DNA from: Anthoceros angustus
Taxonomy: Eukaryota > Plantae > Anthocerotophyta
Direction: 5' to 3'
DNA length: 64,000 bases
Assembly (NCBI GenBank): GCA_010909165.1
Contig: MU008177.1
Location: 682,001-746,000, forward strand
Shown: one piece after another, positions 2,287 to 63,911 of the stretch
Layout: every line of letters begins with the position of its first letter
Numbering within the stretch: position 1 is the first letter of the stretch
Made by a program: the position numbers and the translations under genes
The notes under the pieces: model-generated
Databases searched by the model: none
What the model was told of the DNA's origin: nothing
The model's input: the letters and a program-made list of their open reading frames with translations, nothing else

Positions 2287-3674
2287 TCACGTGAATTTAG
2301 CGGTAAGTCCTTTGTCTCCATTCACAATAAATTCATTGGTGCAACCACTTGAAGGGGAAGGTGACCCACTAGGATATGAGTATTCATCATCATAGCCATC
2401 GGACGAAGGGCTGTCACATTGATATGGCTCAGGTGCAGAAGGATAATCATCACTTGGCGGGGCATCATCATATGGGGTGCTAGGCTCAGACACTGTCGCT
2501 GGACTACTTGAACTGCTACTTGAACTGCTACTTGAACTGCTTCCGCCTTTAATTGAAATATCCCAATTATATGTTACATTGGCGTTGCATAGGCCTTCTA
2601 TACTCCCACTACCTTCAAGAGTAACAGTCCAGATCCTTTGAAATACCACCGGAAGATCAAAAATATCCACAAAATGATAGGGATCCCACCATATGAAATT
2701 CTTGGAATCATGACAATGTTTTGTGTGCTTTTCACATGGAGTTTTTCCGTCACCGCAACATGCTCTTGTAGAATGTTGAAATCCATACTTAGAAGGGTGG
2801 TGAATAATCTCATTAGTCGCATGAAAAGTTGGAAGAAAAATATATCGAGCTTCATGAAGTTTGTCATGAAAATGTGCATGAAGATGATTATTCATCTTCG
2901 TATTGTAGGCATGAATATGCTCATTGACATCTTTATTGCATCCAGATGATTTAGTAGCATGAATAACCAAAGGCGAACACCCCAAAGATCCAACATCAGC
3001 TATGATGAACTTTCGTGCTCCTTGTTTATACAATTTGTTGATATTAACCTCCATCCTCTTTATGAGGGTTTTACGAAATGCTTTCGTAGAAATATTCCGC
3101 CTAGCAACAATTCTTTGTATAAAGTCATCGGTACCTACATCAATATAATATAATGAGTGTGCTAGATGTCTTGCAACATGATGTCTTACATTACTGGTAC
3201 CCTTTCGCTTAAGTTGTTTAGCGAGACGTGGTACCAATTTTTCTTGAAACAATTCCACTTGACGATTAAATGGTAAAACACGTCCATATTGCCTTCCGGT
3301 CGTGCAACAATCCCGCTTTACGGAAGCAAAACTCACGCCTTCATGCGCCACTTTTGGTGCATGATACAAAAAGGGTTGGGGAATTTTTCATAACCAAGGT
3401 GGCTAGCAAAATAATCGACAAGACACGGCTGCTAAACGGCACGCCTTTTTGTATCAAATTCTTGACCATATGGATAGTAATTTGCTTTTGCATTTGCTTT
3501 TAAGTGCAAATGATTATTGTTACCTATATCTGCCAAAGAATCTCCAAAAGAATACAAAGATCCATTGAATCTATGGCGATGCGAAAGTGCCTGTTCCGAT
3601 ACAACGCTCGTGAATAAGATACATAAGATAATAATTTGAATCCTTGATATATTGAAGAATAGTTTCCTCCCCAT
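2287..3674 (-). CDS. GDSL esterase/lipase, intronless, with Ser/Pro/Asp/Tyr-rich C-terminal tail; frameshifted around 3370-3450
   Basis: Signal-peptide-like N-terminus, FGDSLADIGNN, GVSFAS, YIDVGTDDF, GARKFIIADVGSLGCSP, CCG, WDPYH (DxxH). Split across ORFs 3432-3674 and 2287-3369. Confidence 0.8.
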
Positions 3675-5513
3675 CTCTTAAACATAGCATCCAAAAAACA
3701 ATTTCAATAATCAAACACAAGAGAGAAAAAACTTTTTCAAGACAAAGAAGTCTTAATTGCAAACACACTAGTACCATTGATGGTTCTCAAAGTTTTGTCA
3801 ATATCTGGCTCTAAACAACATCAAGGACTTACCTTTGCCAAGGGTGCAAGCCACCACAATTATAAACCTCGACACCCAGGTGTCTGTGTTTCAAATCACG
3901 ACAAGGGAAAAATGTATAAATTATGGCTGCAAGCACCTTTATATATTCCATTTCCATTGTTAGTTTAAAAAAGCATATCTCATGCAGATCTCACACAGCT
4001 AAACTCATAATAGAGAGTGGAGAGGGATCTCCAACTTTATTAAGAATTGCAACTTATCTAGAGGTAGATACTAGTCCTATCCTTTTGCGACATATTTATT
4101 TACCATTTGGGGGTGTAATCCAAACCTCTCTTGTGGATTAGTAATGGTCTATAAACCAATAATCAATTGAATCACTAATTGTATGGGCCTATGTTCGAGA
4201 AAGCTCTAACCATATTCTTTTATACCTATTTAATGATTGTTTTTTTGAGAATAAGAAATTATACTATTGCAGAATTTTCAAGTACCAACAACTAGGGGAT
4301 GCAAGTGCGTAAACAAGTTGTAAATGCACAAGATGCAAGTTAATAAAGAAGCAATCGTGTAGAAGAAGATGAGGATAATTTCAATATTATAAACTTGAGG
4401 TCTTTCGTGGAGGAACTCACATATGAGAGTTGTCATCACTTGACAATGATTTACAAGCCACGTCTAAGTAACCTAAAACAACTAAACTAATGATAAGACT
4501 ATCTGAAAAGAGGTCCCAAAGTTGTAATCTTGTTCAATGGACAATAAAACACAAAGTTAGTATTTAGGGTGAAAGGAAGGCGTGTAAGATGCAATTCAAC
4601 ACATCAAAACCAGACAGTTGGTGTTGGAACTAGAAGTTTTGGAAATAGTCCTTCGGTGAGCGGTTACATATAACTTAAATATTAGTGTAAATTCACAGAG
4701 AGCCTAAGAGCTAACATGAACGTTTAGCAGGGTGCTATTGAGGCGTTGGACATGCCTAGACAAACATTCTTTTGCTAATTCTCGCGGGAAGGCTACTTTG
4801 CAAATCCTAGGCACACAAGCTTTCATGTTTTTCAGCCTTTCGATATGAGATTTTAACAATGGGCTAAGAAATGGAATCATGTTTCTTGAATTGTGAATTT
4901 GAGGCTTGCATGCTTTAGAGTCGAAAGATAAGTCACAAAAACACAATATGAGATGTAGCTAGAGCAGCTTTAGAATTTTTAATATTGAGACCCTTAATAG
5001 TGATACCCAGATAACAAGTGTAATAGAATACTTTCATGCATACAAAGTTGAGGGCCAAGTAAGTTTGGTTCCCTTGTTGATGTGGCATGTCATGATCCAC
5101 AGTTAAGAGTGGATGATGACGTCGAATAGCCTTGCTGCATACGACAAAGAGAAAATGCACAAGGGAAAGCATCAGAAACTGTCCACCAAGAATATACGCA
5201 TATATCACTTATGTGACTCGCCTTCCCACTATACATACATATATGTATATACATATGTAAGATAAGATAATTAAGATAAGCTTTATTGAACCAAGATATA
5301 AGAAGCAAGACTCGGCACTAACCTCTCGTTTTATTTGCGAAGTGGTATGTGCCTGTGTATGGTATATACGGGCGCATCAGATATTATTTTGTCCCATAAT
5401 ATATTGCTGTGTATGCATACATATTATGTAAACCACAGAACTTAAGAAAAAAATGTGCCTGCACTTTCTCTCCCCTTTGATATGCCATGGTGGGACAGCA
5501 TGCAACATAGGAC

Positions 5514-8340: not shown

Positions 8341-8901
8341 ACATTTCAGGACCAACTCGAGACTATCAGTCGATTTTCCCGTTGCAAGATCAGTTTGTGA
8401 TTGTATATGTTCCAAGATGTATGTACCTGTCAGAACAAATCCTCGTCTCCAAAGAGTTGTGAATGAACAATCGGACTTGTAATACAAAATTCTTGATTGC
8501 ACGCACTCTTACGTTTACACCCATGGATGTTAAGTGCCCTAATTCTTGCCAGAAATCCGAACTGCCAAAAATTTCAAGAGTTTAGAGGTCACTCCCTCAT
8601 TAGCATACACTATGCCCAGAAAAGCTCTGTCTCTGAGCTGAATGAGGGCAGTGTGAAAACACTATCTACACATCACCTCCATCACCCGAGGCTGCTAGCC
8701 AGAATTTACCGGACTGCCTTCGCTATAAGATTGCACACATAATCACCATAGCTCTGCAGTCAAGCCCCAAGGCCCCAAGGCAAGATTAAGCATTTTGCCG
8801 ACCGTGGGAAGCATACCAAGCACACAACTTAAAGAGGAAATGCAGGCAGAGTACCAGCTGGGTGTCTACACTGGCCAATCCCACGTTGCTCTAAGTGGAG
8901 A

Positions 8902-9468
8902 TCAAAGCTGGGCAGAAATATGAGATGTAGAAGTGCGGTCCCTTCTCCTACTGGCCTGCAGCAGAGCCCAAGCCTTGGTCCGCTCTGCACCGTCCTTCCA
9001 ACGCTTCACTCGGGCAGAGTCTCGTCTCGCCGTAGCAAGCCTCATAGCTTTTATCTTTTCCTGCGCTTGCTTCTTAGCAAACTCCGATCTCTGCAGCATC
9101 CGCTTCTTATGCTTCCGATTCCTGAGGCTGCCGTCGTTAGGGCGAGAGGGAGGAACTTCCTCGTCCTTGCCGACTTTAATCCAAGCATACGGTCCATACC
9201 CCTTCCTCAGCAAGGCTCGCTTGGCGTAACTCCGCTCCTTGAACCACATACATGCCAGGCCCGAGACCCTGTTGCTTTGAAACAGCCGCTCCCTGCATGG
9301 TTGCAGTCTTGGCACAAGAGCGGCTCCGAGCTCCGCACAGCCACCCGACCAAAAGTCCCGACGAAGAATCCCGGCAGCGTGGTGCGCTTGGATCAGGTCA
9401 GGGCTGTGCACGCTCAAGAAGAAGCGGTGCGCTTGCCTCAGGGCTTGCATCGTTCGGACGGTAGCCAT
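8902..9468 (-). CDS. Small K/R-rich protein with mitochondrial-type presequence (resembles Arabidopsis At5g49210 family, from memory)
   Basis: Open frame from MATVRTMQALRQ; motif PYAWIKVG..PPSRPNDGSLRNRKHKKRMLQR followed by a basic coiled region. A diverged duplicate at 23096-23640 supports it. Confidence 0.65.
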   Translation of the reverse strand: MATVRTMQALRQAHRFFLSVHSPDLIQAHHAAGILRRDFWSGGCAELGAALVPRLQPCRERLFQSNRVSGLACMWFKERSYAKRALLRKGYGPYAWIKVGKDEEVPPSRPNDGSLRNRKHKKRMLQRSEFAKKQAQEKIKAMRLATARRDSARVKRWKDGAERTKAWALLQASRRRDRTSTSHISAQL

Positions 9469-9569: not shown

Positions 9570-9770
9570 ATGGGGTACCCAACGGAGTGGCTGATGCGGC
9601 AGAAGGTGGTTGCCATGGAGACGGGTAAGATCCTGAGGGAGCGCGTGAACCCATGCTACAGGCACGAAGGGGTCAGCCACTTCTCCAAGTGTCAGGATGC
9701 TGTGCAGCTCGACCTGGAATCAATCAAGACCTTCGGCTGGGCAGGGACGCCCGCTCGACCTACATGGAGA
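9570..9770 (+). pseudogene. NDUFB10: Fragment of complex I subunit NDUFB10/PDSW
   Basis: LMRQKVVAMETGKILRERVNPCYRHEGVSHFSKC..V...LESIK..GW resembles plant PDSW (KILREKVKWCYRVEGVNHYQKC). N-terminus missing and conserved residues substituted. Confidence 0.65.
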
Positions 9771-10037
9771 AGGATGTCTATCCATGCTGGCCTGCAATCA
9801 GGTGTGGGATTTTAAGGCCTTGCCTGGCCAAGTGTGTATCATCGTCACCATTCTGCTTCTCACAAATTTTTTCCTCTTGCGCGCGTAGCACTCATCCGAT
9901 GGTTCCTTCTACCTCCAGAAGTTGGTTCCAACCTCTTCGACCTGGTGGATTGCAGTGTTCAGATCTCTGTTTGGTGTCATTTGAACAGATGAAAGTTACA
10001 CTAAGTAGTCCAGCTTTGAAAAATTCTTGTTTATCAG

Positions 10038-12078
10038 TCACTTTTCGAGCACAAACTCCTGAACTTGAATCCCGGTGTGGCGAGCTCCCCCCTGAATGCT
10101 CAACAACACGGTGTCCTGCGCTTTCAGGCTTGTTACTGGGATGGCCAGGCCTCCTCCATTCTCCTCCAGCGCTGCACGAACGATGCTGACAATCACGCAC
10201 AGTAGTCTGGCAGAGGGGGGAGGATGGCAAGGAGGATCATGTCTTTACCTGTGGAGGGTTGGACCAGACAGACTGTTTCTGCGTTCTGAAGGAGTAGGCT
10301 GTGCTTTGAACCATCAGCCTGCATCCGGTAGGCAAGGGGGTTGAGTCAGTGGCAACGTACCCTTCGTTGTGCTTGAAGCTCTACTGGAAGGACTTCTTGA
10401 CACATAAGTATAACACACCTCGCCTTCGACGAGCATGAGCGGCCTCGATTCGATCTTCGAGCGACCAACCAGAACGGCCCGTGTCTGTCCACTCTCGTCA
10501 GCCACGAGTACCTCAACCCCAGTTCGCAGCTCGGAGAGATACGACGTCCTCCCACCTGGCATGGCCACATAGGCATGTACAGGGCCCTGCCAAAGGAACC
10601 TGATCATGGGCGTTAATGGCACCAACCATCCAGTCATCAAGCACAGTAATAGCTTCTGAGCGCTCCAACTGCTTACCGCATTCACACGGAAAGGTCGGCT
10701 AGCAATGTACGACGACTCCAGACACTCCGAATGCACCAGAAACAAAGCCCTTGCAAAAGAGCCAACCTGAAGAAGGAAGGCAAGTCAGCAGAGCCCCAGC
10801 AAATTGCACCCTTCCGCCTGATAGCAGACCCAGCACTTACCAAGAGCCCTTCACCAGGTCGCAACAGGCTGCAGAGATCTACGCAGACTCGATCCCCCAT
10901 ACCAACAGGTTGAACTCTTGTAATAGTAGCCGAAGTCAATTTCACCCTGTTCTCAAGGGCAAGCCTGGATTCCAAGTATGCCTGGTTAAAATCAGACATT
11001 AGAGCTCCCTCGGAAGGTTTTACTAAACCACAGCCGTGCAAACCCACACCACACCCTGAGAACCTCGGGGAACAAAGACAAACAACCTTAAGGTCGAAAA
11101 CCTCTGCAGGATCCTCTGTCTTGAGAAGGACACCATCAGTCCCTGTCTCCAGAGCCTGAAAGCCAACCGAACTCATCAAGATGTTTGTGACTCCAACACA
11201 GCCCAGCCACCACAACATTTTCTCAAATCACCTCGAAACACAGCTTCGCATCCATCGCAGAAGTCGCTGTAGCAAAGATTGACGATGGGCTGTTTTGAAA
11301 CGCCGCCACCATGTTCTCAGCTGGAATAATCTGTCCACAGGCCCCCAGCATGAATAACCTTCCAACGCAACCAACAATATCGCAACCAGAAGCAAGCAGG
11401 ACCGCAGTACCTGCCAGTCCAAAGCATCCATAACCACAATGTCCGCCTTCCCAACAAGCGACCTCACCACATCCTGTTCATTCCCAGAAGCCACCCCTCC
11501 CAGAACCGCAACCTGATTGCCCTCGTAGTCATAGAATTGCCCGTCCCTGAGCACCAGAGGCTCTATCCGGGCCACCGCTGCCAGTCCATCACAAACGCTG
11601 CTTCAGCAAGACAGGCAACGTGCATGCCAAATCGCAAAAAGCCGAAACGAGCTGACTCCGAGCTCCTACAGTTCCAAGACTCCGCCAGCTCCTGGGTCTG
11701 CGGTGTGAAGACGAAGGTACTCCATCCTCGCTCCACAGCCGCTGTCATCACATCCTTGTTCCGAGTCCACACCCACACTTTCTTCTCCCCCGCGTGCATT
11801 CTCACACCGGACGCCTTCCTCCCAGCTCGAATCCCGCAGGCCGCGGCCGCCGCTGCTCCCATGGGCCCCGACCCGCGCTGCAGCTGCAGTGCAGCTGCTG
11901 CACCTGCAGGGCCGCCATCGTGTAGCCCTGTTTCGCCCGGAGAAGCCGCACAGTAGAACGGGAGTTTTGGAAGCGGGAGCTGCGATGGCGGAGGCGATCT
12001 TGTGTGGGTCTCAGAGGGGGCTGCCGCCGGGGTCGCGCTCAGGCCGGAAGCGCAGAGGCTGCAGGCAAGAGCGGCCAT
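10038..12078 (-). CDS. 3-dehydroquinate synthase II-like protein, plastid-type (At3g28760-like), about 9 exons; alternative start at 11862
   Basis: [25 protein letters not shown]; DWQ|[12 protein letters not shown]; [11 protein letters not shown]; [25 protein letters not shown]; [27 protein letters not shown]; LLQNAETV; GARHTG...FVLEK*. Canonical GT-AG junctions. Confidence 0.92.
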
Positions 12079-12110
12079 GGGGGCTGGGTGTCCTGCGCGC
12101 GGGGGAGCAG

Positions 12111-13330
12111 AGTGTGTTTGACGGACTTGGTCAGAAAGATCTGGTGACAGGGAATGGCTTGATTGCAGGGTATTCCCAACAGGGCATTGGGCAGAAAGCC
12201 CTTCGGCCCTACTGTGAGATGCAACAAAAAGGCATCTCTGTACCCAATTCTGCGACGTTTTTTTGTGCCTCCTGCAGGCATGTGCCAGTCTGGGCACGTC
12301 AGCTTTGGGGAATGGAGAGCAGCTTCATGGGGAAAGAAGGAGGATATCAAACTTGTCGGCCGCGTTTTGGTTAATATGTAGGCAACGTGTGGCAGCTTGG
12401 AAGATGCTCAGAGAGTGTTCGATGGACTTGCTCAAACAGATGTGGTGACTTGGGCTGCTATGATAGCAGGGTATTCCCAGCAGCGAATGGGCCTGGAAGC
12501 CCTTGGTCTCTACAGTGCAATGCAAATTCTGTCACAAGTGTGTGCTTCCTGCAGGCAGTGGGCACTCTGGCTCTGGAGAGAGGGAAGCAGATTCATGCAC
12601 AGATTGCAGAGGTGAGACATCAAGCTGATGTGTTTGTAGGCAGTAGTTGGTGAACATGTTTGTGAAGTGCGACAGGATGGAAGACGCTCAAAGAGTGTTT
12701 GACGGACTCGGTCAAAGAGGCTTCTTGACATGGAACAGCATGTTTGCAGGGTATGGGCCAGAAAGGCCCCAATGCCATCCAAGAAGGCAGCAATGTTTGT
12801 GAAGTGCGACAGCTTGGAAGACGCTCAAAGAGTGTTTGACGGACTCGGTCAAAGAGGCTTCTTGACATGGAACAGCATGTTTGCAGGGTATGGGCTAGAA
12901 AGGCCCCAATGCCATGCAAGAAGGAGGCAATGCTGTCCCCGACTCCATCACGTTTGTGTGCCTCCTGCAGGCATGTGCAAGTCTGGGAAGTCCAGCTGTG
13001 GGGAAGGGGAATCCAAGGAGCTTCATGCTGAAATTAGAGAATGAGGACATGAAGCTGATGCCTTTGTAGCTAACAGTTCGGTAAACATGTATGCAAATTG
13101 GAAGATGCTCAGAGATTGTTTGACGGGCTTGGTGAGGAAGATGTGTTGACGTGGAATGCCATGATAGCAGGGTATTCGCAGCAGGGCATGGACCAGAAAG
13201 CGCTGGTTTTGTACAGCTTTATGCTAGACAAAGGGATTACTGGGGAACTTTGTTGTGTCTCCTGCAGGCATGTGCAAGTGTGGGCTCCCCAGCTTTGGAC
13301 ATGGGGAAGCAGGCTCATGCGCAAATCAGA
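12111..13330 (+). pseudogene. Frameshifted PLS-class PPR relic containing a ~123-bp internal duplication (12656-12778 / 12793-12915)
   Basis: EDAQRVFDGLAQTDVVTWAAMIAGYSQQ; FVKCDSLEDAQRVFDGLG; EDAQRLFDGLGEEDVLTWNAMIAGYSQQG; CLLQACASVGSPALDMGKQAHAQI. Many stops and frameshifts. Confidence 0.9.
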
Positions 13331-13609
13331 GGAGGTGGTCATCACAGTGATGGGTTGCTATCCCGGTTTGGTCGCGCTGTAGCAAGCTCACGGCAGTAAC
13401 CGAAAAATTATGATGCGCAGCAGCTCCTCCGGGAGGTGCTCCAACGCTTATCCCTCCATCCTTGCAAGTTGCCATCACTGTCGGAACAGTGAGCTCGGAG
13501 TTACATAGAATGGAACCCCTAATAAGCTTGGCAACTGCCCTAGGTTCGCTTCCGTGTTGCGTCCGGGGCCCAAGCTTGTGCACCGGCAGGAAGATGCGGT
13601 GTTGCCAAA

Positions 13610-21180: not shown

Positions 21181-22370
21181 AGCTTGCACTTATCTTTGCT
21201 ACCTCGACAAGTATCAAACATGTATACAAAGAAAAAATAAGCATGTTTTGAAAGACATGTGGTTTTCAAGGCCAAAATGACACACCCTCTTATGCAACCA
21301 ATCACAGCCTGTTGAGTGCTAAAGAAAAAAAGGATCGTCTGGAATCTCAGCGATGAGCAACCTTCCATAAGGCACAACTTTAATACTAGGCCTCCAATTA
21401 AATAGCCCCGGCTGTCCAATGAATCAACTCACAATGCACCTCTTGGTTGATTGTCTAGTTATATAAAACCACAGAAAGGCAATTCACAACCTTCTAGTTA
21501 TAACTCCTAGATGCAATAAAACTAAAACTCTTATACAGATGCCATCAACTCTAGTACACTCGGCTGATTCATATCCCACGGGCTCTCTCCTAATGGAGTA
21601 GTTGCTAACCCCGGATCCCGGCATTGTGCAACTTCCGCGCCTCCCCTAATGGAGCAGTTGCTAACCTCATATCACGGCCTTGTGTGACTTCCGCACTTGT
21701 CTCTATGTCCAAAGTCATAAATGCTTCGGGCCTGCAAAATCTTCCGTGGAATCCATGTCCCTTGCCTTTCCATAGCCTCGCCATGTACGCTCTACTAGTA
21801 GACATTTTATCGTATCTTTTAGGGTTGCCATTGCATCTCCCCGCGAATATCCTACCGTGCACAGGGGCTTATAACCGTGCACGGGTCTTACAACCGGGCT
21901 TGCGCCATATGTACTATGTACACATATTGGTTTCAAACCGGCTGGGGGAAGCTTTTAGGGGTGTGTGGGCCTTGGGGAGCGGGCAGCGGGCCAGTCGGGT
22001 TTGAGCTTCCTAAACTCTTTCCTGCCTTGTTTGCACTTGTTTAAATTTCCTTGAATTCGCAAATGTACCATGTGCCCTTACCGATTCTTGCTGGGCAGAG
22101 TGCGCTGGTGCTGCATGAAGCTGCATTGCTTGTGCCACTGCTTGTGTCCAAATGGCTTAGGCCAAATGGACACACATTTATAACAACGCCGTGATTAAGC
22201 ATCCTGAGCTTGGATCAGTACTTAGATGGGGTGCCTAAAGGGAGTGGATGCCCTTTGTGCAAGTAGCTTAGGCACACCATGGTACAAGTTGTTAAGTACC
22301 AAGTCCCATGGAGGAAATCCGTCCTTAGTGAACTAAAATAAAATTCTTCTTCTCTTCTTATCCTCATCGA

Positions 22371-22386
22371 ACCCTAAACCCTAAAT
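22371..22386 (+). promoter_or_regulatory. Double telobox (AAACCCTA-type)
   Basis: aaccctaaaccctaaa, preceded by a pyrimidine-rich tract. Confidence 0.5.
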
Positions 22387-23095
22387 CCTTATAGAAAGCT
22401 TATTCGCAGCTCGTAGCTGGAATCCTTATCGAAAGCTTTCTCTTGTAGCTTGAAGGGCGTGGATGACCAGATTCCCTTGCTCTCTTTGTCAATTTGACAA
22501 GTGAAGAGACTGGCCAAATTCTCTGTTGATATTCTCTGTTGGTCTCCACTTCGTCCCAACACCACTTCCGAACATGCAAGAGCTTGATGAATGCTGGAGC
22601 ATCTGATCAGTGGCGAGCTGCAGGCTAGCCTGTACTCGCGCCTCGCTCAGCGCCCTAGCTGGCTACGAGGCGCGAGTAGTTTTAACCTCAGTTAGGCTAG
22701 CTTAGCTAACTTATTAGGCCAGCTAACTGGCATTGGTAAACAGACTCAGGTCAGGACTCGGGTCAGGGTTCAAGAGTTTAAACGAGACTTGTCGTTCAAT
22801 TGTTGGCAATGACAGTTCAAGAGAGGTTCTGAGCTAGACGAGGTCAGTGTCCATGTTTCAGCTGTGAAAACTTGATCCAGACATCACTTCCATCACCAGA
22901 GCCGCTAGCAACCGGAATGACTTTGCTACTATGTTTCACACATAATCTCCATAGCTCGGCAGTCGAATCCCAAGGACAGATGAGCATTTTGCTGACCGTG
23001 AGAAGCATACCAAGCACGCAACTTGAAGAGGAAATGCCAGGAAGAGGACCGGCTGGGTGTTACACTGGCCAATCCCATGTCGCTCGGAGTGTAGA

Positions 23096-23640
23096 TCAAA
23101 GCTGGGCAGAAACATGAGATGCTGAGGTGCGGTCCCTTCTCCTACTGGCCTGCAGCAGAGCCCAGGCCTTGGTCCGCTCTGCACCGTACTTCCAAGGCTT
23201 CACTCGGCAGAGTCTCGTCATCGCTGTAGCAAGCCTCATAGCTTTTATCTTGTCCTGTGCTTGCTTCTTGGCAAACTCCGATCTCTGCAGCATCCGCTTC
23301 TTGTGCTTCCGGTCTCTGAGGCTGCCGTCGTTAGGGCGAGAGGGAGGACCTTCCTCGTCCTTGCCGACTTTAATCCAAGCATACGGTCCATTCCTCGTCC
23401 TCAGCAAGGCTCTCTAGGCGTAACTCCGCTGCTTGAACCACAGACATGCCAGCCCTGAGACCCAGTTGCTTTGAAAGCATGGTTGCAGTCTTGGCACAAG
23501 AGCGGGGTCCGCACAGCCACCTGACCAAAAGTCCCGACTGAGAATCCCGGCAGCGTGGTGCGGTCGGATCAGGTCAGGGTTGCGCACGCTCAAGAGGAAG
23601 CGGTGCGCCTGCCTCAGGGCTTGCAGCGTTCGGACGCCGC
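23096..23640 (-). pseudogene. Duplicate of the 8902-9468 gene lacking the ATG and carrying a premature TAG
   Basis: High by-eye identity to ~8630-9460 including the 3' flank (22825 onward). Codon AAG (K) became TAG at about 23414; the 5' end is replaced by the riboflavin synthase leader. Confidence 0.85.
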
Positions 23641-23680
23641 TCACTTCAAGCGGGAGCCTCCGGAATCTGGATCAGCTGCC

Positions 23681-24454
23681 ATGGCGGAGGCGGTCTTGTG
23701 TAGGTTTCACGGGGGGCCTGCCGCTGGGATCGCGCTCAGGCCGGGGCGGGCGCAGGGGCTGCGGGCGAAGAGGGGCCATGCAGGGCGGGTGTCCTGCGCG
23801 CGGGGGAGCAGGAGGCCGCCCAGTGCGCTCTTCACGGGGATCGTGGAGGAAATGGGGCGGGTGAAGGAGGTGCGGGAGGTGGACACCGGGGGCTTCCAGA
23901 TGACGGTGGAGGCGGCCCTGGTGCTGGAGGACGTGAAGCTCGGAGACAGCATCAGCGTGAACGGCACCTGCTTGACGGTCACCGCCTTCACTCCGGATTC
24001 CTTCTGCGTGGGCCTGGCGCCCGAGACGCTCCGGCGGACCTCGCTCGGGGAGGCTCCGCCCGGGGCGACAGTGAATCTGGAGCGCTCGCTGCAGCCGAGT
24101 TCCAGGATGGGAGGTCACTTCGTGCAGGGCCATGTGGACGGCACCGGCACCATCGTGTCCTTCGATCCCGAGGGGGACTCGCTGTGGGTCAAGGTGAAGG
24201 CTGCTCCGGAGCTGCTGCGTTACATCGTGCCCAAAGGGTACATTGCTGTGGACGGCACCAGCCTCACCGTGGTGAGTGTGCTGGATGACGAGAGCGCCTT
24301 CACCTTCATGCTCGTGGCCTACACGCAGCAGAAGATTGTTATTCCCAGCAAGAAGGTTGGTGATAAGGTGAACCTGGAGGTGGACATTGTCGGCAAGTAC
24401 GTGGAGCGGATGATGCAGGGATACAAGGCTGCTCCGTTTCCTGTTCCAGCGTGA
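23681..24454 (+). CDS. Riboflavin synthase (alpha chain), plastid-targeted, intronless
   Basis: LFTGIVEEMG; GDSISVNGTCLTV; ETLRRTSLG; VNLERSL...RMGGHFVQGHVDG; YIVPKGYIAVDGTSLTV; VNLEVDIVGKYVER. Confidence 0.97.
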   Translation: MAEAVLCRFHGGPAAGIALRPGRAQGLRAKRGHAGRVSCARGSRRPPSALFTGIVEEMGRVKEVREVDTGGFQMTVEAALVLEDVKLGDSISVNGTCLTVTAFTPDSFCVGLAPETLRRTSLGEAPPGATVNLERSLQPSSRMGGHFVQGHVDGTGTIVSFDPEGDSLWVKVKAAPELLRYIVPKGYIAVDGTSLTVVSVLDDESAFTFMLVAYTQQKIVIPSKKVGDKVNLEVDIVGKYVERMMQGYKAAPFPVPA

Positions 24455-25210: not shown

Positions 25211-25796
25211 CTAGATGGCCAGGTACCGCTTGGATACTTGCTTGCCAGCAACAAGGCCGGCAGCAACCACGCCTCCCAACGCGCCTGCAATGGCGGCCGT
25301 GCGGGGGCCGGCAGCAGCCTTATAGAGAGCCCCGGTTCCAAGCCCCGCAGCTGCGCTGTTCAGAATGTCGTCACTGCTCCGGTAATGGCAAGCGGCGCTC
25401 TCCATGCCGGCGTAGAACAAGCCTAGAATGCCTAAAGTGTTGCCGTAGCTCCTGCCTCTGTGCCCCGAGGCATTCAACACCCGATTCACCCGCAGCTTGG
25501 CAGTGTCCCCCGCTTCTGTAGATCGTAAACCCTCGGCCAGCCCCTTTGCGCCTCCGGCAACAGCGCCCGACAGGTACCCGACTCCCGTGTAATACGTCAA
25601 GTTCTCGCTCCAACTCCGCCTCTTCACCGCGGCCTCCTCGGTGAAGAGCAGCTCCGGTGTGGTAGGCAGCCGGAAAATCGTGTCCAGTGACTTAGCATCC
25701 ACCGGCCCATACAGATCTGCGTAGGGGTTGTACAGGCGTGTGCCGCTGCCATCGCTGTCCCCTACAAATCCGCCGCCGTGCTCGGAATCCTCCATC
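25211..25796 (-). CDS. TIM23: Mitochondrial inner-membrane translocase subunit Tim23
   Basis: RLYNPY; LPTTPELLFTEEA...RRSWSENLTYYTG..YL.G; KLRVNRVLNASGHRGR..GN.LG..GL.YAGMES. Confidence 0.95.
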
Positions 25797-27018
25797 CGGC
25801 CAGTCCCCCAATTGCCTTCCTTCCCACGTCCAAAGCGCAATCAGAGCTGCAACACGTATCTCCCTGCCACGCGCAGAACACACCGACTTTCCTGGCATCC
25901 GCTTGTCTCCCTGTGCATCGCCCGCTGCCTGTGGTAACGGCGCAGATTTAACCAGGGCTACAGTGGCAGCAATCGGACCGGGGGAATTGTGCGTTATATT
26001 CCAGGATCTTCTTCCCTCGAGCTTCCAGTGACAGTCCACAAACGCTTATAGACTAGGTCCGTAAATGTGAATCAAACGCGTCACCGAGGATCGAAATCCA
26101 GACCGCCTATTCCCGAGACTTAACTGTCTACCACAGAGCTACATAACAGGGAGAGGAGCTTAAAGAGGAAGGCGACTTTCCATTTCTGAAAGACACGCTG
26201 AACCATGCCACCTCGCTCTCTCCTTCTCATCGCGCATAGACGATGCATTTTGTAAGTGCCCCACGGGAAAGCGGATATGAGGACGAGGGGGCCGCTGGGT
26301 GGGAGGCTATGGCTGCCACGGAGCAAACGGAGTCCGTGCTGCAACCCTGTGGAGGAATGGTGCAGGCGTTTATCAAGCCTTCGGGCCACGGCGGAGGACA
26401 GCAGTGGTGAAAGTGAGGGATTGGAAGTCGAGATTTATAGTTATCTGGCTGTTGGTGACTGTGTATTGGGGCAACAAATTGTGGGTGTTCTGGGGGGATG
26501 GAAATTTAAGACCTTATGCTGGATTGCAGATGAGCCAACAGGTGGGCAGTCTTTGCTGGTCGATTCTCATCGCAACTACTCCAGAACAAGGTTCCAGCAG
26601 GTAGGGTGGATGGTGATTTCCTGATGGCTCTGCTGTCAGCTTTTTGGGTTTGACAGTGTCAGGAGGTAATGACTGGCAGGCATCCTTGGTGGGCAGTTTG
26701 CAGCTGACCATGAGTAATCACCACAGACAGACCCCAAGTACGTGGATTTCGTGCACAGCACATCGAGGGAGAGGGAGGGCTGGCGGCTCGACCCTTGCTG
26801 GAACCCTGCTTGGGTCATCTCAAAAGATGCCGCCACACCCCAGCAAGGTCAACATGTGGCGGTAGGGAGAGCAGCTTACTTGGGGCTGGATCCAGTCAGG
26901 TACCTCTCTCCCGTTCAGGGGCTTCAGGGCTGTGGTCACCAGACAGGACTGGGTCTGACAAAAAAAAGTGGGAAAACCCTGCAGTGTTGAGAACAGTGAA
27001 GATTGTATTGAGTTATGG

Positions 27019-57339: not shown

Positions 57340-59035
57340 TCACTTACGGACGTCCGGTGAATAGTATGTAGACGGAGCCACCACAACAGCCTGGATCGTG
57401 AAACCTGCCTTTTCGCAAGCCACCTGAAGTTGCTCTGCCTGGAGTTCACCATTTGGGCACATTGCAACTATAGCTCCTCCACTCCCGGTGAACTTGCATG
57501 CTGCACCCACGCTTCTTGCAGTCTCCACCATTTGAATGTTAAGCTTGCCTAGCACATTGTCTCCAAATATTTGCCTGCAGCAAATTGTGGATGAAGGATG
57601 TCACGAGTTGTCCCAAAGGCCCCAAGCAGATGACATGTGACTAGGAAAGTAAAGTACCTGCGAAGATCAAAGTTACGATCCATGAGCCTAGCAAGGCTGA
57701 CATTGTCATGCGCAAGCAGGGCTGCACGGCCTTGCACAGCCAGATCCGCAATCTCAGCCATCAGTTTTGTTACTGTTTCGTCGCCTTCTACCCACCTTTT
57801 CCTGACAGTACTGTGGACCTGCGACATCGGAGGCCTTGAGTTAGTGTGAAAAAAAATCTTAGAAGGCTTCGGTAGGGGGCTACATCATTGATGGATTCAC
57901 AAACAAGCATTCACAGTCATATCATCGTTACAACAATCAGAGGCTGTCTACGGTGGTGGGAAAATGACAACCAAACCGGGTGTTCAGGATAGCAGAGTAC
58001 AAGCCTTGCCAGAGTCGCTTGGGTTCTTGGTGTAGATAAGGTAAAGGGGCGGAAGCAACCGATGATCCATCGGTGTGTAAATCCCATGACCGAGGCTCTC
58101 CATTGCCTGTTTGTTGAAATCCTGCATGCAGCATTGCACCACCCTGTCTAAGCAGCATCTCATACCCAGCAAGTCTTGAAGCACTCAGCTGCTGCTTGCC
58201 TGCTGATGTGGAGGCAACCGAAACAAACCATGTAGACGAGCCCACCATAGACCTGCACCACACGATCTTGGAGACCTGCTGTGATACCCAGCTCTTCTTC
58301 TGCTCTTAAAATTAGGCTTGGTCGAAACTCCATCTGTACAAGGTGTCCCACACCATAAAACTGTAACAGGCAGTTCAAGGCTGCGCATACAATGGCACTG
58401 GAGCCTGATAGTCCTGCCTGAAGCACAACCAGCTCATGGTTAGCAAACAATATCTTGCAACTAAGGGTCACAAAAACCAGTCTCAAACGAACGGGACCAC
58501 GCAGGCTACCTGTCTGGGAATGTTGGTATCATATGACATAGTAAAGTTCTCCTCAGGAAGCTTAATATTGCTTTCCACACAATGTTTGAAAAACACCTCC
58601 ACAGTAGCCATCAGCAGCCTAAGCCCTCCATAGTAGCCCTCTGACTGAACGTGTTCTGCCTGCACACCTCTGGCAAGCTGGTCAACCTTGCATGAAGTAG
58701 TAGCATCCTCCAGCTATGGTCCAGTGAATTTTTGCGGGAACGAGAGATATCAGCAGAATCAGAATATCAACATACAAAAATCTCCTTAATTAACGCACCA
58801 GTTGGCCGAGCGAGGTGAATTCACACGGGTCGTGTATCGGATGGGGCCTGAGAGCAAGTCTGTGGGATGGTTGCACGGAAGCAGACGCCCAGAAATTGGC
58901 CAGTGAGAATGACAATGTGTTGCCATAGTAGGCATCACTAGGATTTCCTAGCAGGCCAACCCTCGCAAAGACCCGGTGTTCAATTGGCTTCTCACTACGG
59001 CCGCGGGCCTCGCTGTCTGATAATTCTGCATCCAT
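57340..59035 (-). CDS. GLCAK1: Glucuronokinase (GHMP kinase family), multi-exon
   Basis: [16 protein letters not shown]; [12 protein letters not shown]; YDTNIPRQ|[14 protein letters not shown]; [23 protein letters not shown]; [10 protein letters not shown]; KFTGSGGA. Confidence 0.95.
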
Positions 59036-59131
59036 GGCGGACTGTTTGAGCGTTACCAAGCCCTAAGATAGCTTGTGGACGGACCTAGTCCGTCTTTGTG
59101 ACCGTACAGTCGCTGAATTGTAACAGGAGCG

Positions 59132-59695
59132 ATGGGGAGCTTGGAGGCTGATTTCGTGTCTCTCATGCAATCGCATGCGAAGAGCAACCAGCTTACAAGG
59201 AATCGAATCGGTTTGTGCTAGCTCGGACTAAGCCTTTCTTTACTCAGGCATGATCGATTCACGCCTTTCCTGATTTCTGAATCTGCTGCTCCAGAGAAGG
59301 CGAAGAAGGAAGCGTTGGCAGGCGCATCTGTGGTAGCGGACTTGTTTGTAGACAGCGTGAATGGAGGCGTGCAAGAAGTTTTCATCAATGAAAAACGCAT
59401 TGAGCTAGAAGCCCGAACTCTGAAGGAGACAGTACAGCGGTTCTCCCAGCAGTCTAATCAGTGGCTGACTCTCTTTCAGACATTCGATTCGGCGCTCAAG
59501 GTGCAGAGCAGAGCACTTCTCCTTGTTGATGCTGTATGGCTTGTTCCTCGTCTTCCTCGAGTGATGTTCCAGTTCTATGGCGTGGTTCAGGAGATAGGGG
59601 ACTTCGAGAATTGGATCAAGGTGATGGAGTATGACTGTCAGAGCATTGGGGGTGCCCTGGCTCATGTTGCTTCAAGAGGAGGCACCTCAAGATGA
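59132..59695 (+). CDS. BLOS1: BLOC-1 subunit 1 (BLOS1/GCN5L1), 3 exons
   Basis: MGSLEADFVSLMQSH...EKAKKEALAGASVVADLFVDSVNGGVQEVFINEKRIELE...DSALK|EIGDFENWIKVMEYDC. Confidence 0.93.
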
Positions 59696-59853
59696 CCATG
59701 CTTCTGCTGATCTCAAAATCCGGAGTTGCACCAATTGTGAGCAGCTGTCAGGCCCATGAAGGTTCACTGTGTCGAGCATGATTGCGCTGTTGTTGATTGA
59801 GGAACATCTTCAAGGGAAAGGGACTCTTGTTGTAGAGAACTGTTTTGTGCTAT

Positions 59854-60748
59854 TCAGTCTATTCGTTCAACAGGAAGGTTCATCAATTCTCTAATCCCCT
59901 CCAAGACCTGTAAGAAGGAACATGTCAGCTTCGCAACTGCTGAAGTATATCACCCGGAAGTAACAAAGTCAGGCTAACTGTGGAAGAGTATACCAGCTTA
60001 ATTTGGCCCTTTATGTTCCCTATCTGCTCCGTGCGTGCTTCAATCTGACTGGGCACAAAAAAATTGCAGCTGTAACCAAGCTGGAGTACAACTCAATGGC
60101 GTTTGACATCGTACCTTGGAAATGAATTAGAAGATGGAAACCTCCTCACCTAGCAAGGACCTTTTGCGTGACAGCTATGAACTGCAAGGCCTCTCCGGGT
60201 GAATTCCACATGAAAGCCGAGGCCAACGTCTACGAAAATACGTGATGTATCTGGCCTGTACATGGTGAGCAGTCTTCACTCACACAAAACCATTTCAAGT
60301 AGGCTGCTATCTACAGCAAGGAGAAGCAGAGTCCTTCGTATGCCTGCTTCCTTACACATCAGCTTGGACATAAACCTCAGAGCCAAGATTAATCATAGTC
60401 CTGATGTTCTGTGTCTTGTTTTGTTCCAGCACTTGGATGTTGTTTGCAAGGTCAGAGCTGCAAGGCCCTGTCAAGGAGCATGCTAAAGTGATGCCCGCCG
60501 GTGCAGTTATGTAATTAGCAATCTGCTAAAAAGGATACAAGACCCGCTGCTTCTCCAGCAATTTGTCCCTGGATGCATATCCTGGGTTGTGAGAATTGTG
60601 CCACCCCTCCTCAAAGCAGCTAGACACACGACTCTAAAGTTTTTATAGCTCACCTCTGGGCCACAGCGCGGACAAGATCAGGCTTCAGCCGCTTGTCCAC
60701 AAACTGCTCATACTGCTGAACCTTGGCGGCCTTCTTCACACTCTCCAT
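59854..60748 (-). CDS. UXT: UXT prefoldin-alpha-like protein, copy 1 (apparent indels)
   Basis: VQQYEQFVDKRLKPDL; RTMINLGSEVYVQADVPDTSRIFVDVGLGFHVEF; IKGQIKL|VLEGIRELMNLP. Several indels relative to copy 2. Confidence 0.8.
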
Positions 60749-60915
60749 CGCAGCTCAAGGTAAGCTAACGATTTAACCCTGAGACTGAACCTGAGTTTGA
60801 GAAGACTAGGGTTTTGTGGACTGCCTCCTTAGGGTTTTTCGAGGTTATCAATATTCGACCTCTCCTTCCCTCTCTCCAGTCCCAGCTTACATGCGTGCAG
60901 GGAGGTTTTAGCGCC

Positions 60916-61039
60916 ATGGCCAAGTCGAAGAATCACACACATCAGTCTTACAAGGCGCACAGGAACGGGATCAAGAAGCCTAAGAAGAACAAGTATATTT
61001 CGCGCAAGGGCATGGATCCCAAGTTCCTGCGCAACCAAA
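60916..61039 (+). pseudogene. RPL29: Truncated RPL29 5' half at the duplication junction
   Basis: [41 protein letters not shown], then switches to antisense glucuronokinase sequence. Confidence 0.85.
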
Positions 61040-61839
61040 CAAACCATGTAGACGAGCCCACCATAGACCTGCACCACACGATCTTGGAGACCTGCTGTGA
61101 TACCCAGCTCTTCTTCTGCTCTTAAAATTAGGCTTGGTCGAAACTCCATCTGTACAAGGTGTCCCACCATAAAACTGTAACAGGCAGTTCAAGGCTGCGC
61201 TACAATGGCACTGGAGCCTGATAGTCCTGCCTGAAGCACAGCCTCATGGTTAGCAAACAATATCTTGCAACTAAGGGTCACAAAACCAGTCTCAAACGAA
61301 CGGGACCACGCAGGCTACCTGTCTGGGAATGTTGGTATCATATGACATAGTAAAGTTCTCCTCAGGAAGCTTAATATTGCTTTCCACACAATGTTTGAAA
61401 AACACCTCCACAGTAGCCATCAGCAGCCTAAGCCCTCCATAGTAGCCTCTGACTGAACGTGTTCTGCCTGCACACCTCTGGCAAGCTGGTCAACCTTGCA
61501 TGAAGTAGTAGCATCCTCCAGCTATGGTCCAGTGAATTTTGCGGAACGAGAGATATCAGCAGAATCAGAATATCAACATACAAAAATCTCCTTAATTAAC
61601 GCACCAGTTGGCCGAGCAGGTGAATTCACACGGGTCGTGTATCGATGGGGCCTGAGAGCAAGTCTGTGGGATGGTTGCACGGAAGCAGACGCCCAGAAAT
61701 TGGCCAGTGAGAATGACAATGTGTTGCCATAGTAGGCATCACTAGGATTTCCTAGCAGGCCAACCCTCGCAAAGACCCGGTGTTCAATTGGCTTCTCACT
61801 ACGGCCGCGGGCCTCGCTGTCTGATAATTCTGCATCCAT
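61031..61839 (-). pseudogene. GLCAK1: 3'-truncated duplicate of glucuronokinase with many 1-bp deletions
   Basis: Matches 58214-59035 except for small deletions; ends at the junction. Confidence 0.85.
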
Positions 61840-61935
61840 GGCGGACTGTTTGAGCGTTACCAAGCCCTAAGATAGCTTGTGGACGGACCTAGTCCGTCTT
61901 TGTGACCGTACAGTCGCTGAATTGTAACAGGAGCG

Positions 61936-62494
61936 ATGGGGAGCTTGGAGGCTGATTTCGTGTCTCTCATGCAATCGCATGAAGAGCAACCAGCTTACAA
62001 GGAATCGAATCGGTTTGTGCTAGCTCGGACTAAGCCTTTCTTTACTCAGGCATGATCGATTCACGCCTTTCCTGATTTCTGAATCTGCTGCTCCAGAGAA
62101 GGCGAAGAAGGAAGCGTTGGCAGGCGCATCTGTGGTAGCGGACTTGTTGTAGACAGCGTGAATGGAGGCGTGCAAGAAGTTTTCATCAATGAAAACGCAT
62201 TGAGCTAGAAGCCCGAACTCTGAAGGAGACAGTACAGCGGTTCTCCCAGCAGTCTAATCAGTGGCTGACTCTCTTCAGACATTCGATTCGGCGCTCAAGG
62301 TGCAGAGCAGAGCACTTCTCCTTGTTGATGCTGTATGGCTTGTTCCTCGTCTTCCTCGAGTGATGTTCCAGTTCTATGGCGTGGTTCAGGAGATAGGGGA
62401 CTTCGAGAATTGGATCAAGGTGATGGAGTATGACTGTCAGAGCATTGGGGGTGCCCTGGCTCATGTTGCTTCAAGAGGAGGCACCTCAAGATGA
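61936..62494 (+). pseudogene. BLOS1: BLOS1 duplicate with frameshifting deletions (possibly sequencing error)
   Basis: Matches 59132-59695 with deletions such as gcatgaag vs gcatgcgaag, ttgttgtag vs ttgtttgtag, gaaaacg vs gaaaaacg. Confidence 0.8.
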
Positions 62495-62652
62495 CCATGC
62501 TTCTGCTGATCTCAAAATCCGGAGTTGCACCAATTGTGAGCAGCTGTCAGGCCCATGAAGGTTCACTGTGTCGAGCATGATTGCGCTGTTGTTGATTGAG
62601 GAACATCTTCAAGGGAAAGGGACTCTTGTTGTAGAGAACTGTTTTGTGCTAT

Positions 62653-63546
62653 TCAGTCTATTCGTTCAACAGGAAGGTTCATCAATTCTCTAATCCCCTC
62701 CAAGACCTGTAAGAAAGGAACATGTCAGCTTCGCAACTGCTGAAGTATATCACCCGGAAGTAACAAAGTCAGGCTAACCGTGGGAAGAGCATACCAGCTT
62801 AATTTGGCCCTTTATGTTCCCTATCTGCTCCGTGCGTGCTTCAATCTGACTGGGCACAAAAAAATTGCAGCTGTAACCAAGCTGGAGTACAACTCAATGG
62901 CGTTTGACATCGTACCTTGGAAATGAATTAGAAGATGGAAACCTCCTCACCTAGCAAGGACCTTTTGCGTGACAGCTATGAACTGCAAGGCCTCTCTCCG
63001 GGTGAATTCCACATGAAAGCCGAGGCCAACGTCTACGAAAATACGTGATGTATCTGGCCTGCACATGGTGAGCAGTCTTTCACTCACACAAACCATTTCA
63101 AGTAGGCTGCTATCTACAGCAAGGAGAAGCAGAGTCCTTCGTATGCCTGCTTCCTTACACATCAGCTTGGACATAAACCTCAGAGCCAAGATTAATCATA
63201 GTCCTGATGTTCTGTGTCTTGTTTTGTTCCAGCACTTGGATGTTGTTTGCAAGGTCAGAGCTGCAAGGCCCTGTCAAGGAGCATGCTAAAGTGATGCCCG
63301 GTGCAGTTAAAATTAGCAATCTGCTAAAAAGGATACAAGACCCGCTGCTTCTCCAGCAATTTGTCCCTGGATGCATATCCTGGGTTGTGAGAATTGTGCC
63401 ACCCCTCCTCAAAGCAGCTAGACACACGACTCTAAAGTTTTTATAGCTCACCTCTGGGCCACAGCGCGGACAAGATCAGGCTTCAGCCGCTTGTCCACAA
63501 ACTGCTCATACTGCTGAACCTTGGCGGCCTTCTTCACACTCTCCAT
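62653..63546 (-). CDS. UXT: UXT prefoldin-alpha-like protein, copy 2 (apparently intact)
   Basis: Same motifs as copy 1, with the frame preserved in PDTSRIFVDVGLGFHVEFTRREALQFIAVTQKVLAR. Confidence 0.88.
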
Positions 63547-63719
63547 CGCAGCTCAAGGTAAGCTAACGATTTAACCCTGAGACTGAACCCGAGTTTGAGA
63601 AGACTAGGGTTTTGTGGACTGCCTCCTTAGGGTTTTTCGAGGTTATCAATATTCGACCCTCTCCTTCCCTCTCTCCAGTCCCAGCTTACACCCACGTTGC
63701 GCAGGGAGGTTTTAGCGCC

Positions 63720-63911
63720 ATGGCCAAGTCGAAGAATCACACGGCGCACAATCAGTCTTACAAGGCGCACAGGAACGGGATCAAGAAGCCTAAGAAGAAC
63801 AAGTATATTTCGCGCAAGGGCATGGATCCCAAGTTCCTGCGCAACCAAAGATACGCGAAGAAGCACAATCGGATTCCTGGTGCTGATGCTGGGGACAATG
63901 TTGAAGAGTAG
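63720..63911 (+). CDS. RPL29: 60S ribosomal protein L29 (eL29), second paralogue
   Basis: [63 protein letters not shown]. tagggttt teloboxes at about 63605-63635. Confidence 0.97.

Follow-up and report, generated by a model that had tools for sequence, protein, structure and literature searches.

Neither segmental duplication followed by reciprocal loss nor the close packing of divergent gene pairs is unusual. The locus described here, in a hornwort genome, resembles the former in that two blocks lie 14 kb apart, with each essential gene kept in one of them and its other copy deleted or pseudogenised. It differs in that the block boundary cuts a presequence exon, and a leader relic now stands immediately 5′ of a neighbouring opposite-strand gene. 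The locus also recalls the head-to-head gene pairs of compact plant genomes. The ATGs of the DHQS-II and riboflavin synthase (RibC) frames stand 123 nt apart (11862 versus 11985) or overlap by 94 nt (12078 versus 11985), depending on the DHQS-II start, and a second pair, mL87 (ATG 9468, minus strand) and an NDUFB10-like gene (ORF from 9570, plus strand), is arranged head-to-head with ATGs ~100 nt apart. Here, however, DHQS-II and RibC are split between the two copies, each facing the other’s dead relic.

Two other known systems bear on the relic. As in overprinting, or de novo N-terminal extension, an in-frame, ATG-initiated ORF lies opposite a (former) coding exon; in this case translation of the antisense frame is only putative, and the two frames are never intact together in either copy. 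As in the acquisition of a transit peptide by exon shuffling or leader duplication, a leader fragment has been copied to a second locus and is in frame there with other sequence, a PPR array on the plus strand and DHQS-II on the minus strand. The sense-strand recipient, however, is a pseudogene, and the putative antisense use is without precedent in the literature searched: a full-text search turned up no report of one transit peptide having arisen antisense to another.

Two copies of a multi-gene block

An earlier note on this DNA had matched 11971-12110 to 23648-23811 by eye, at about 80% identity with indels, and had called for a pairwise alignment. Self-BLAST of the 64-kb window, the whole stretch of DNA analysed here, recovered the match at 84.1% identity over 138 columns (11978-12110 = 23674-23811, E 7.6e-34). 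Global pairwise alignment, with which MAFFT agrees, carried it through a more diverged extension to 11946 = 23637. This right-arm match is one end of a duplicated block of ~1 kb (Table 1). The left arms, 8652-9460 and 22863-23636, share 86% identity over 811 columns, and weaker similarity extends back to ~8630/22828. The arms touch in copy B (at 23636/23637), and are 2,485 bp apart in copy A, where the corresponding junction is 9460/11946.

Table 1 Features of the two block copies and of adjoining sequence (window coordinates)
Feature	Position	Strand	Description
mL87, copy A left arm (body and 3′ flank)	8630-9460	-	Intact; CDS 9468-8902, 188 aa
A-only segment	9461-11945		2,485 bp: mL87 start codon and promoter, NDUFB10/PDSW-like gene (+), DHQS-II (-), long-form codon 45 onwards
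NDUFB10/PDSW-like complex I subunit, exon	9570-9812	+	phmmer match to plant chain 7aqw_p, E 1.3e-11
DHQS-II-like gene	10038-12078	-	~9 exons; stop 10038-10040; exon 1 ends 11670
Copy A right arm	11946-12110	both read	+: RibC 5′UTR relic and first 42 codons (ATG 11985); -: DHQS-II 5′ region, as presumed promoter/5′UTR, or, with a start at ATG 12078, codons 1-44
Decayed PLS-type PPR array (pseudogene)	12106-13400	+	PPR/PPR_2 matches; stops, frame changes and internal tandem duplications in three-frame translation
mL87 pseudogene, copy B left arm	22828-23636	-	86% identity to copy A
Copy B right arm	23637-23811	+	RibC 5′UTR remnant, ATG 23681, first 43 presequence codons
RibC	23681-24454	+	Intronless, 257 codons; PF00677 in two stretches, E 7e-49

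The blocks are collinear paralogues in which each gene is functional in one copy only. Copy A (8.6-12.1 kb) carries intact mL87, NDUFB10 and DHQS-II, with RibC reduced to a 126-nt coding stub within a 165-nt relic. Copy B (22.8-24.5 kb) carries an intact RibC and a dead mL87, with no trace of NDUFB10 or DHQS-II. The duplication, the complementary gene content, the state of the reading frames and the indels are all directly observed.

The product of the copy A mL87 gene matches At3g51010 (chain AN of 6xyw, also 188 aa; phmmer E 2.6e-6) and 9evs_1s, annotated mL87 (E 4.6e-5). The chain match and the equal length place it among plant mitoribosomal mL87 proteins; an exact look-up of the sequence gave no match. 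In copy B, mL87 homology breaks 5 nt past the start codon with no substitute ATG, a Lys codon has become a premature TAG, and there is a pair of 1-nt indels. Compared with its Arabidopsis counterpart, the NDUFB10-like ORF is short of ~30 residues at the N terminus, and the gene may have a short upstream exon. Insertion of the 2,485 bp into copy A is not credible, since the insert would have had to supply, each precisely in register, the opening codons of mL87 and a DHQS-II gene with its 5′ end missing.

With the two arms of copy A joined and then aligned to copy B, substitution divergence was 15.6% in the mL87 3′ flank, 6.9% in the mL87 CDS and 10.4% where the stub encodes RibC, rising to 25.6% (10/39), plus three indels, in 11946-11984. 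Such a pattern in the stub would fit a RibC leader under weak constraint in one of the lineages.

The window holds other repeats. An A+T-rich stretch just left of copy B contains telomere-like AACCCTAA units (22365-22390), and a dispersed 170-nt repeat (80%) has one copy in the same place (22145-22310) and another at 1761-1931. A 1-kb repeat (93%) lies near the window start (1-981 and 3317-4294), and a 2.8-kb tandem duplication (98%) pairs 58214-61039 with 61031-63849. Within the PPR pseudogene beside the stub, 12656-12795 is duplicated in tandem as 12793-12932 (140 nt, 95.7%). A chimeric plus-strand ORF of 129 codons (11985-12374) runs from the relic RibC start through 42 frame-shifted leader codons into a PPR motif. 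We also considered a larger tandem duplication that would include PPR genes, and rejected it: the array at 12.1-13.4 kb and the intact PPR sequence at 27-29 kb share only 68% identity over 175 nt.

Riboflavin synthase and its leader

The plus-strand leader that had been read at 23681 does open a riboflavin synthase gene. The encoded protein starts MAEAVLCRFHGG, has two PF00677 (lumazine-binding) repeats and contains the conserved FTGIVEE core. It carries 49 residues ahead of LFTGIVEE, and alignment with bryophyte, lycophyte and Logan/JGI RibC sequences places the invariant core from residue 51. Between an in-frame stop at 23522 and the core, ATG 23681 (context GCCATGG) is the sole in-frame ATG, and none occurs in any frame in 23482-23680, the ~200 nt before it. 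RibC must thus use the duplicated piece whichever locus is older, and the copy B piece is almost certainly the coding N-terminus of RibC.

The leader is unlike any other RibC leader found. It is short (~49 aa) and G/R-rich, with 6% S+T, 16% G and a net charge of +9, and the homology shared with copy A stops 6 codons short of the conserved core. Database search, tree and alignment revealed no relative closer than 82% and none with the same leader; identity to bryophyte RibC reaches that figure over the core only. An exact look-up of RibC gave no match, and hornwort DNA was not found in the metagenomes scanned. No alternative or older RibC leader was seen in the A+T-rich, repeat-like sequence that flanks the block on its left.

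RibC is single-exon in the liverworts Marchantia and Calypogeia (L081, L083), as it is here, which rules out a recent RibC retrogene. Their leaders run to ~90 aa and bear no relation to the 49-aa one. Neither liverwort has a DHQS-II gene adjoining RibC, so liverworts do not share the RibC/DHQS-II pairing, and neither DHQS-II nor mL87 was found near RibC at any of the 80 RibC loci examined. Downstream of RibC in the hornwort window is a minus-strand gene of the Tim17/Tim22/Tim23 family (25211-25840; PF02466, E 1.5e-28).

Candidate starts of DHQS-II

DHQS-II was searched exon by exon. Its exon ORFs match PF01959 (E 1e-33, 3e-19 and 8e-3), between them covering the whole domain; plant members of this family carry the database name '3-dehydroquinate synthase homolog'. 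In tblastn, for which an asparagus orthologue was also queried, the rice orthologue P0011 matches over residues 42-78 and 135-390, with none for the less conserved 79-134. The first intron, 11669-11578, has donor GTAGGA at 11669 and acceptor CAG at 11578. A full-text literature search for a plant DHQS-II homologue returned nothing.

Three in-frame ATGs are available: 12078 (CCATGG context) and 11862, both of which the earlier note had named, and 11799, which it had overlooked. The frame from 12078 is continuous with DHQS-II as had been claimed, running stop-free into exon 1. An extension ahead of the conserved core, starting at an ATG, is present in DHQS-II as in RibC. From ATG 12078 there are 98 residues before KKVWVW, and from 11862 there are 22-26; in orthologue models the KK/KL at the head of the VWVWT core is preceded by 33-60 residues. 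The 15-residue stretch just after ATG 11862 contains the presequence motif [SG][VI][RK]M[RHC]A ahead of KK(T)VWVWT. Angiosperm presequences end in S[VI][RK]M[RC]A...KKTVWVWT, the grass orthologues reading SVRMRAS... and SIKMCAS.... This match indicates that the homologous part of the presequence lies downstream of 11862. The in-frame Met at 11797-11799 falls inside this motif, just before the core, and is common to the grass homologues P0011, P0037 and P0039. This conserved feature may mark a cleavage site, or translation may alternatively start there.

The long form begins MAALACS.... Its N-terminal 44 residues are rich in S, T, P and A (20% S+T) and carry almost no charge (net +1); the short form has 4% S+T. 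A word search with DHQS-II exon 1 returned angiosperm homologues only, among proteins of up to 427 aa; the long form would be ~450 aa. Upstream of 11862 there is an out-of-frame ATG at 11918, in strong context, which opens a 38-codon uORF overlapping 11862. A 5′UTR hairpin upstream of 11862 was no different from shuffles (z = -1.1). The ATG used by DHQS-II is more likely to be 11862, or possibly 11799, than 12078.

How much weight the antisense frame can bear was assessed in several ways. When 11865-12078 was shuffled, 26% of the shuffles were also stop-free in frame over these 72 extra codons. The frame moreover stays open for 83 codons beyond ATG 12078, to 12327, in the antisense of the PPR pseudogene. 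The stop-free antisense ORF therefore means little.

Inside the 44 putative codons the copies differ by six indels (1, 3, 1, 3, 1 and 1 nt), in all of which A is the shorter, and some of the 1-nt indels adjoin G runs, where not every one need be genuine. From the RibC ATG to the boundary the stub measures 126 nt in A versus 131 nt in B, and with an A-like stub the RibC ATG falls out of frame. A B-like stub joined in translation to exon 1 of copy A gives two stops in the DHQS-II frame at the junction. In copy B itself the antisense frame ends ...RLRHGS-stop, just where the earlier note had placed its stop. In neither copy, then, are both frames intact: A has an open minus-strand frame and a shifted plus-strand frame, and B an intact plus-strand frame and stops in the minus-strand frame. 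Had a common ancestor possessed both frames intact, one lineage would have had to acquire three or more compensating frameshifts.

There was no sign of constraint on putative DHQS-II codons 32-44 (26% divergence plus 3 indels in 11946-11984 versus 15.6% in the 3′UTR). Codon-position GC and the spread of substitutions over codon positions gave no signal for either frame, the differences being evenly spread.

Origin and use of the duplicated leader piece

We favour a reading, to which we give a probability of roughly 55%, in which the copy A piece is what remains of the RibC leader, now situated in the promoter/5′UTR of its head-to-head neighbour DHQS-II, after duplication and complementary loss. 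The ancestral compact cluster would have had the order mL87 (-), NDUFB10 (+) and DHQS-II (-), the last head-to-head with the RibC 5′ end (+), and would have been segmentally duplicated within the hornwort genome. Copy A would have kept mL87, NDUFB10 and DHQS-II, its RibC relic now being fused to the PPR pseudogene. Copy B would have kept RibC, and a single 2,485-bp deletion could account for three losses, those of NDUFB10, DHQS-II and the mL87 start. DHQS-II would be translated from 11862, or possibly 11799, and the longer ORF from 12078 would have arisen incidentally, through a high G+C content and the indels gathered in the relic. That mL87 and NDUFB10, in the same block, form another head-to-head pair counts for this reading. 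Counting against it, a plastid transit peptide would normally be longer than 22-26 residues, the N-terminal 44 of the 12078 form seem by composition to resemble one, and ATG 11918 would interfere with initiation at 11862 unless the 5′UTR is shorter than 55 nt. As to direction, parsimony favours B as the parental locus, as no special event is then needed at RibC; A would be the copy whose right end fell inside the RibC leader.

The earlier note had proposed that a transit peptide was recruited from the antisense strand of a duplicated leader. Part of this stands, in that the segments are true duplicates, the B copy almost certainly encodes the RibC N-terminus, and A has an in-frame antisense ATG. 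The segment is not, however, an isolated leader; it ends a multi-gene duplication with reciprocal loss. That an organelle-targeting peptide arose here from the antisense of the other gene’s leader, whether as an extension of DHQS-II or in a rebuilding of RibC, we place on the unlikely side. The route through DHQS-II, which is the earlier idea with its direction fixed, is itself unlikely: overprinting would have taken place in A, where indels in the freed relic fused ATG 12078 to DHQS-II and created a 72-residue extension, its first 44 residues derived from the antisense of the RibC leader. The CCATGG context of that ATG and the stop-free run into exon 1 argue for it, as does the seemingly transit-peptide-like composition of the long-form peptide. 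So does the alternative presequence, unusually short and preceded by ATG 11918, and the six indels, which all shorten A, jointly create the DHQS-II frame. Yet about a quarter of shuffles are open by chance, and the frame is open far into obvious non-coding sequence. The 11946-11984 segment has diverged at least as fast as the 3′UTR, with the part encoding codons 1-31 somewhat less diverged (10.4%), and the DHQS-II promoter would have to sit within the PPR pseudogene.

The converse route seems improbable. Here A would be parental and RibC the recruiter: the cluster would have been copied to a site before RibC and mostly deleted, and the antisense of the DHQS-II 5′ region would have become a new start and presequence for RibC. 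The intact mL87 of A and its truncation from codon 3 in B would agree with this order of events, as would the unusual RibC leader and the end of the homology so close to the RibC core; but loss of mL87 in B is expected equally under reciprocal loss. The route also needs an insertion exactly before the core of a presumably essential gene with loss of the old leader, of which there is no trace left of the block, together with a net 2-nt frame correction and a new promoter. Very improbable, finally, is an RNA-mediated (processed) origin of block B from a spliced plus-strand transcript of A. The 2,485 bp would then be an intron, and on the plus strand this segment does begin with GT (9461-9462) and end with AG (11944-11945) after a pyrimidine-rich run; we estimate that GT...AG would occur by chance at ~2% of junctions, allowing for two junction placements and two strands. 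Against this, the supposed intron holds a gene on the same strand (NDUFB10), exon 1 would be antisense to the entire mL87, and no poly(A) remnant or other mark of a retrocopy was found after RibC or the block.

Under the favoured reading of duplication and complementary loss, the locus is an annotation trap, as a longest-ORF rule yields a 72-residue DHQS-II extension that may not exist. It is also a clean, small example of a compact plant genome resolving a multi-gene duplication by complementary loss, with leader relics left beside live genes. Were the 12078 start true, the loose sequence needs of transit peptides would have let a new one arise from the antisense of an old one, a natural example of the birth of a targeting peptide by overprinting, and this would be relevant to the ways in which genes recover organelle targeting after relocation or rearrangement.
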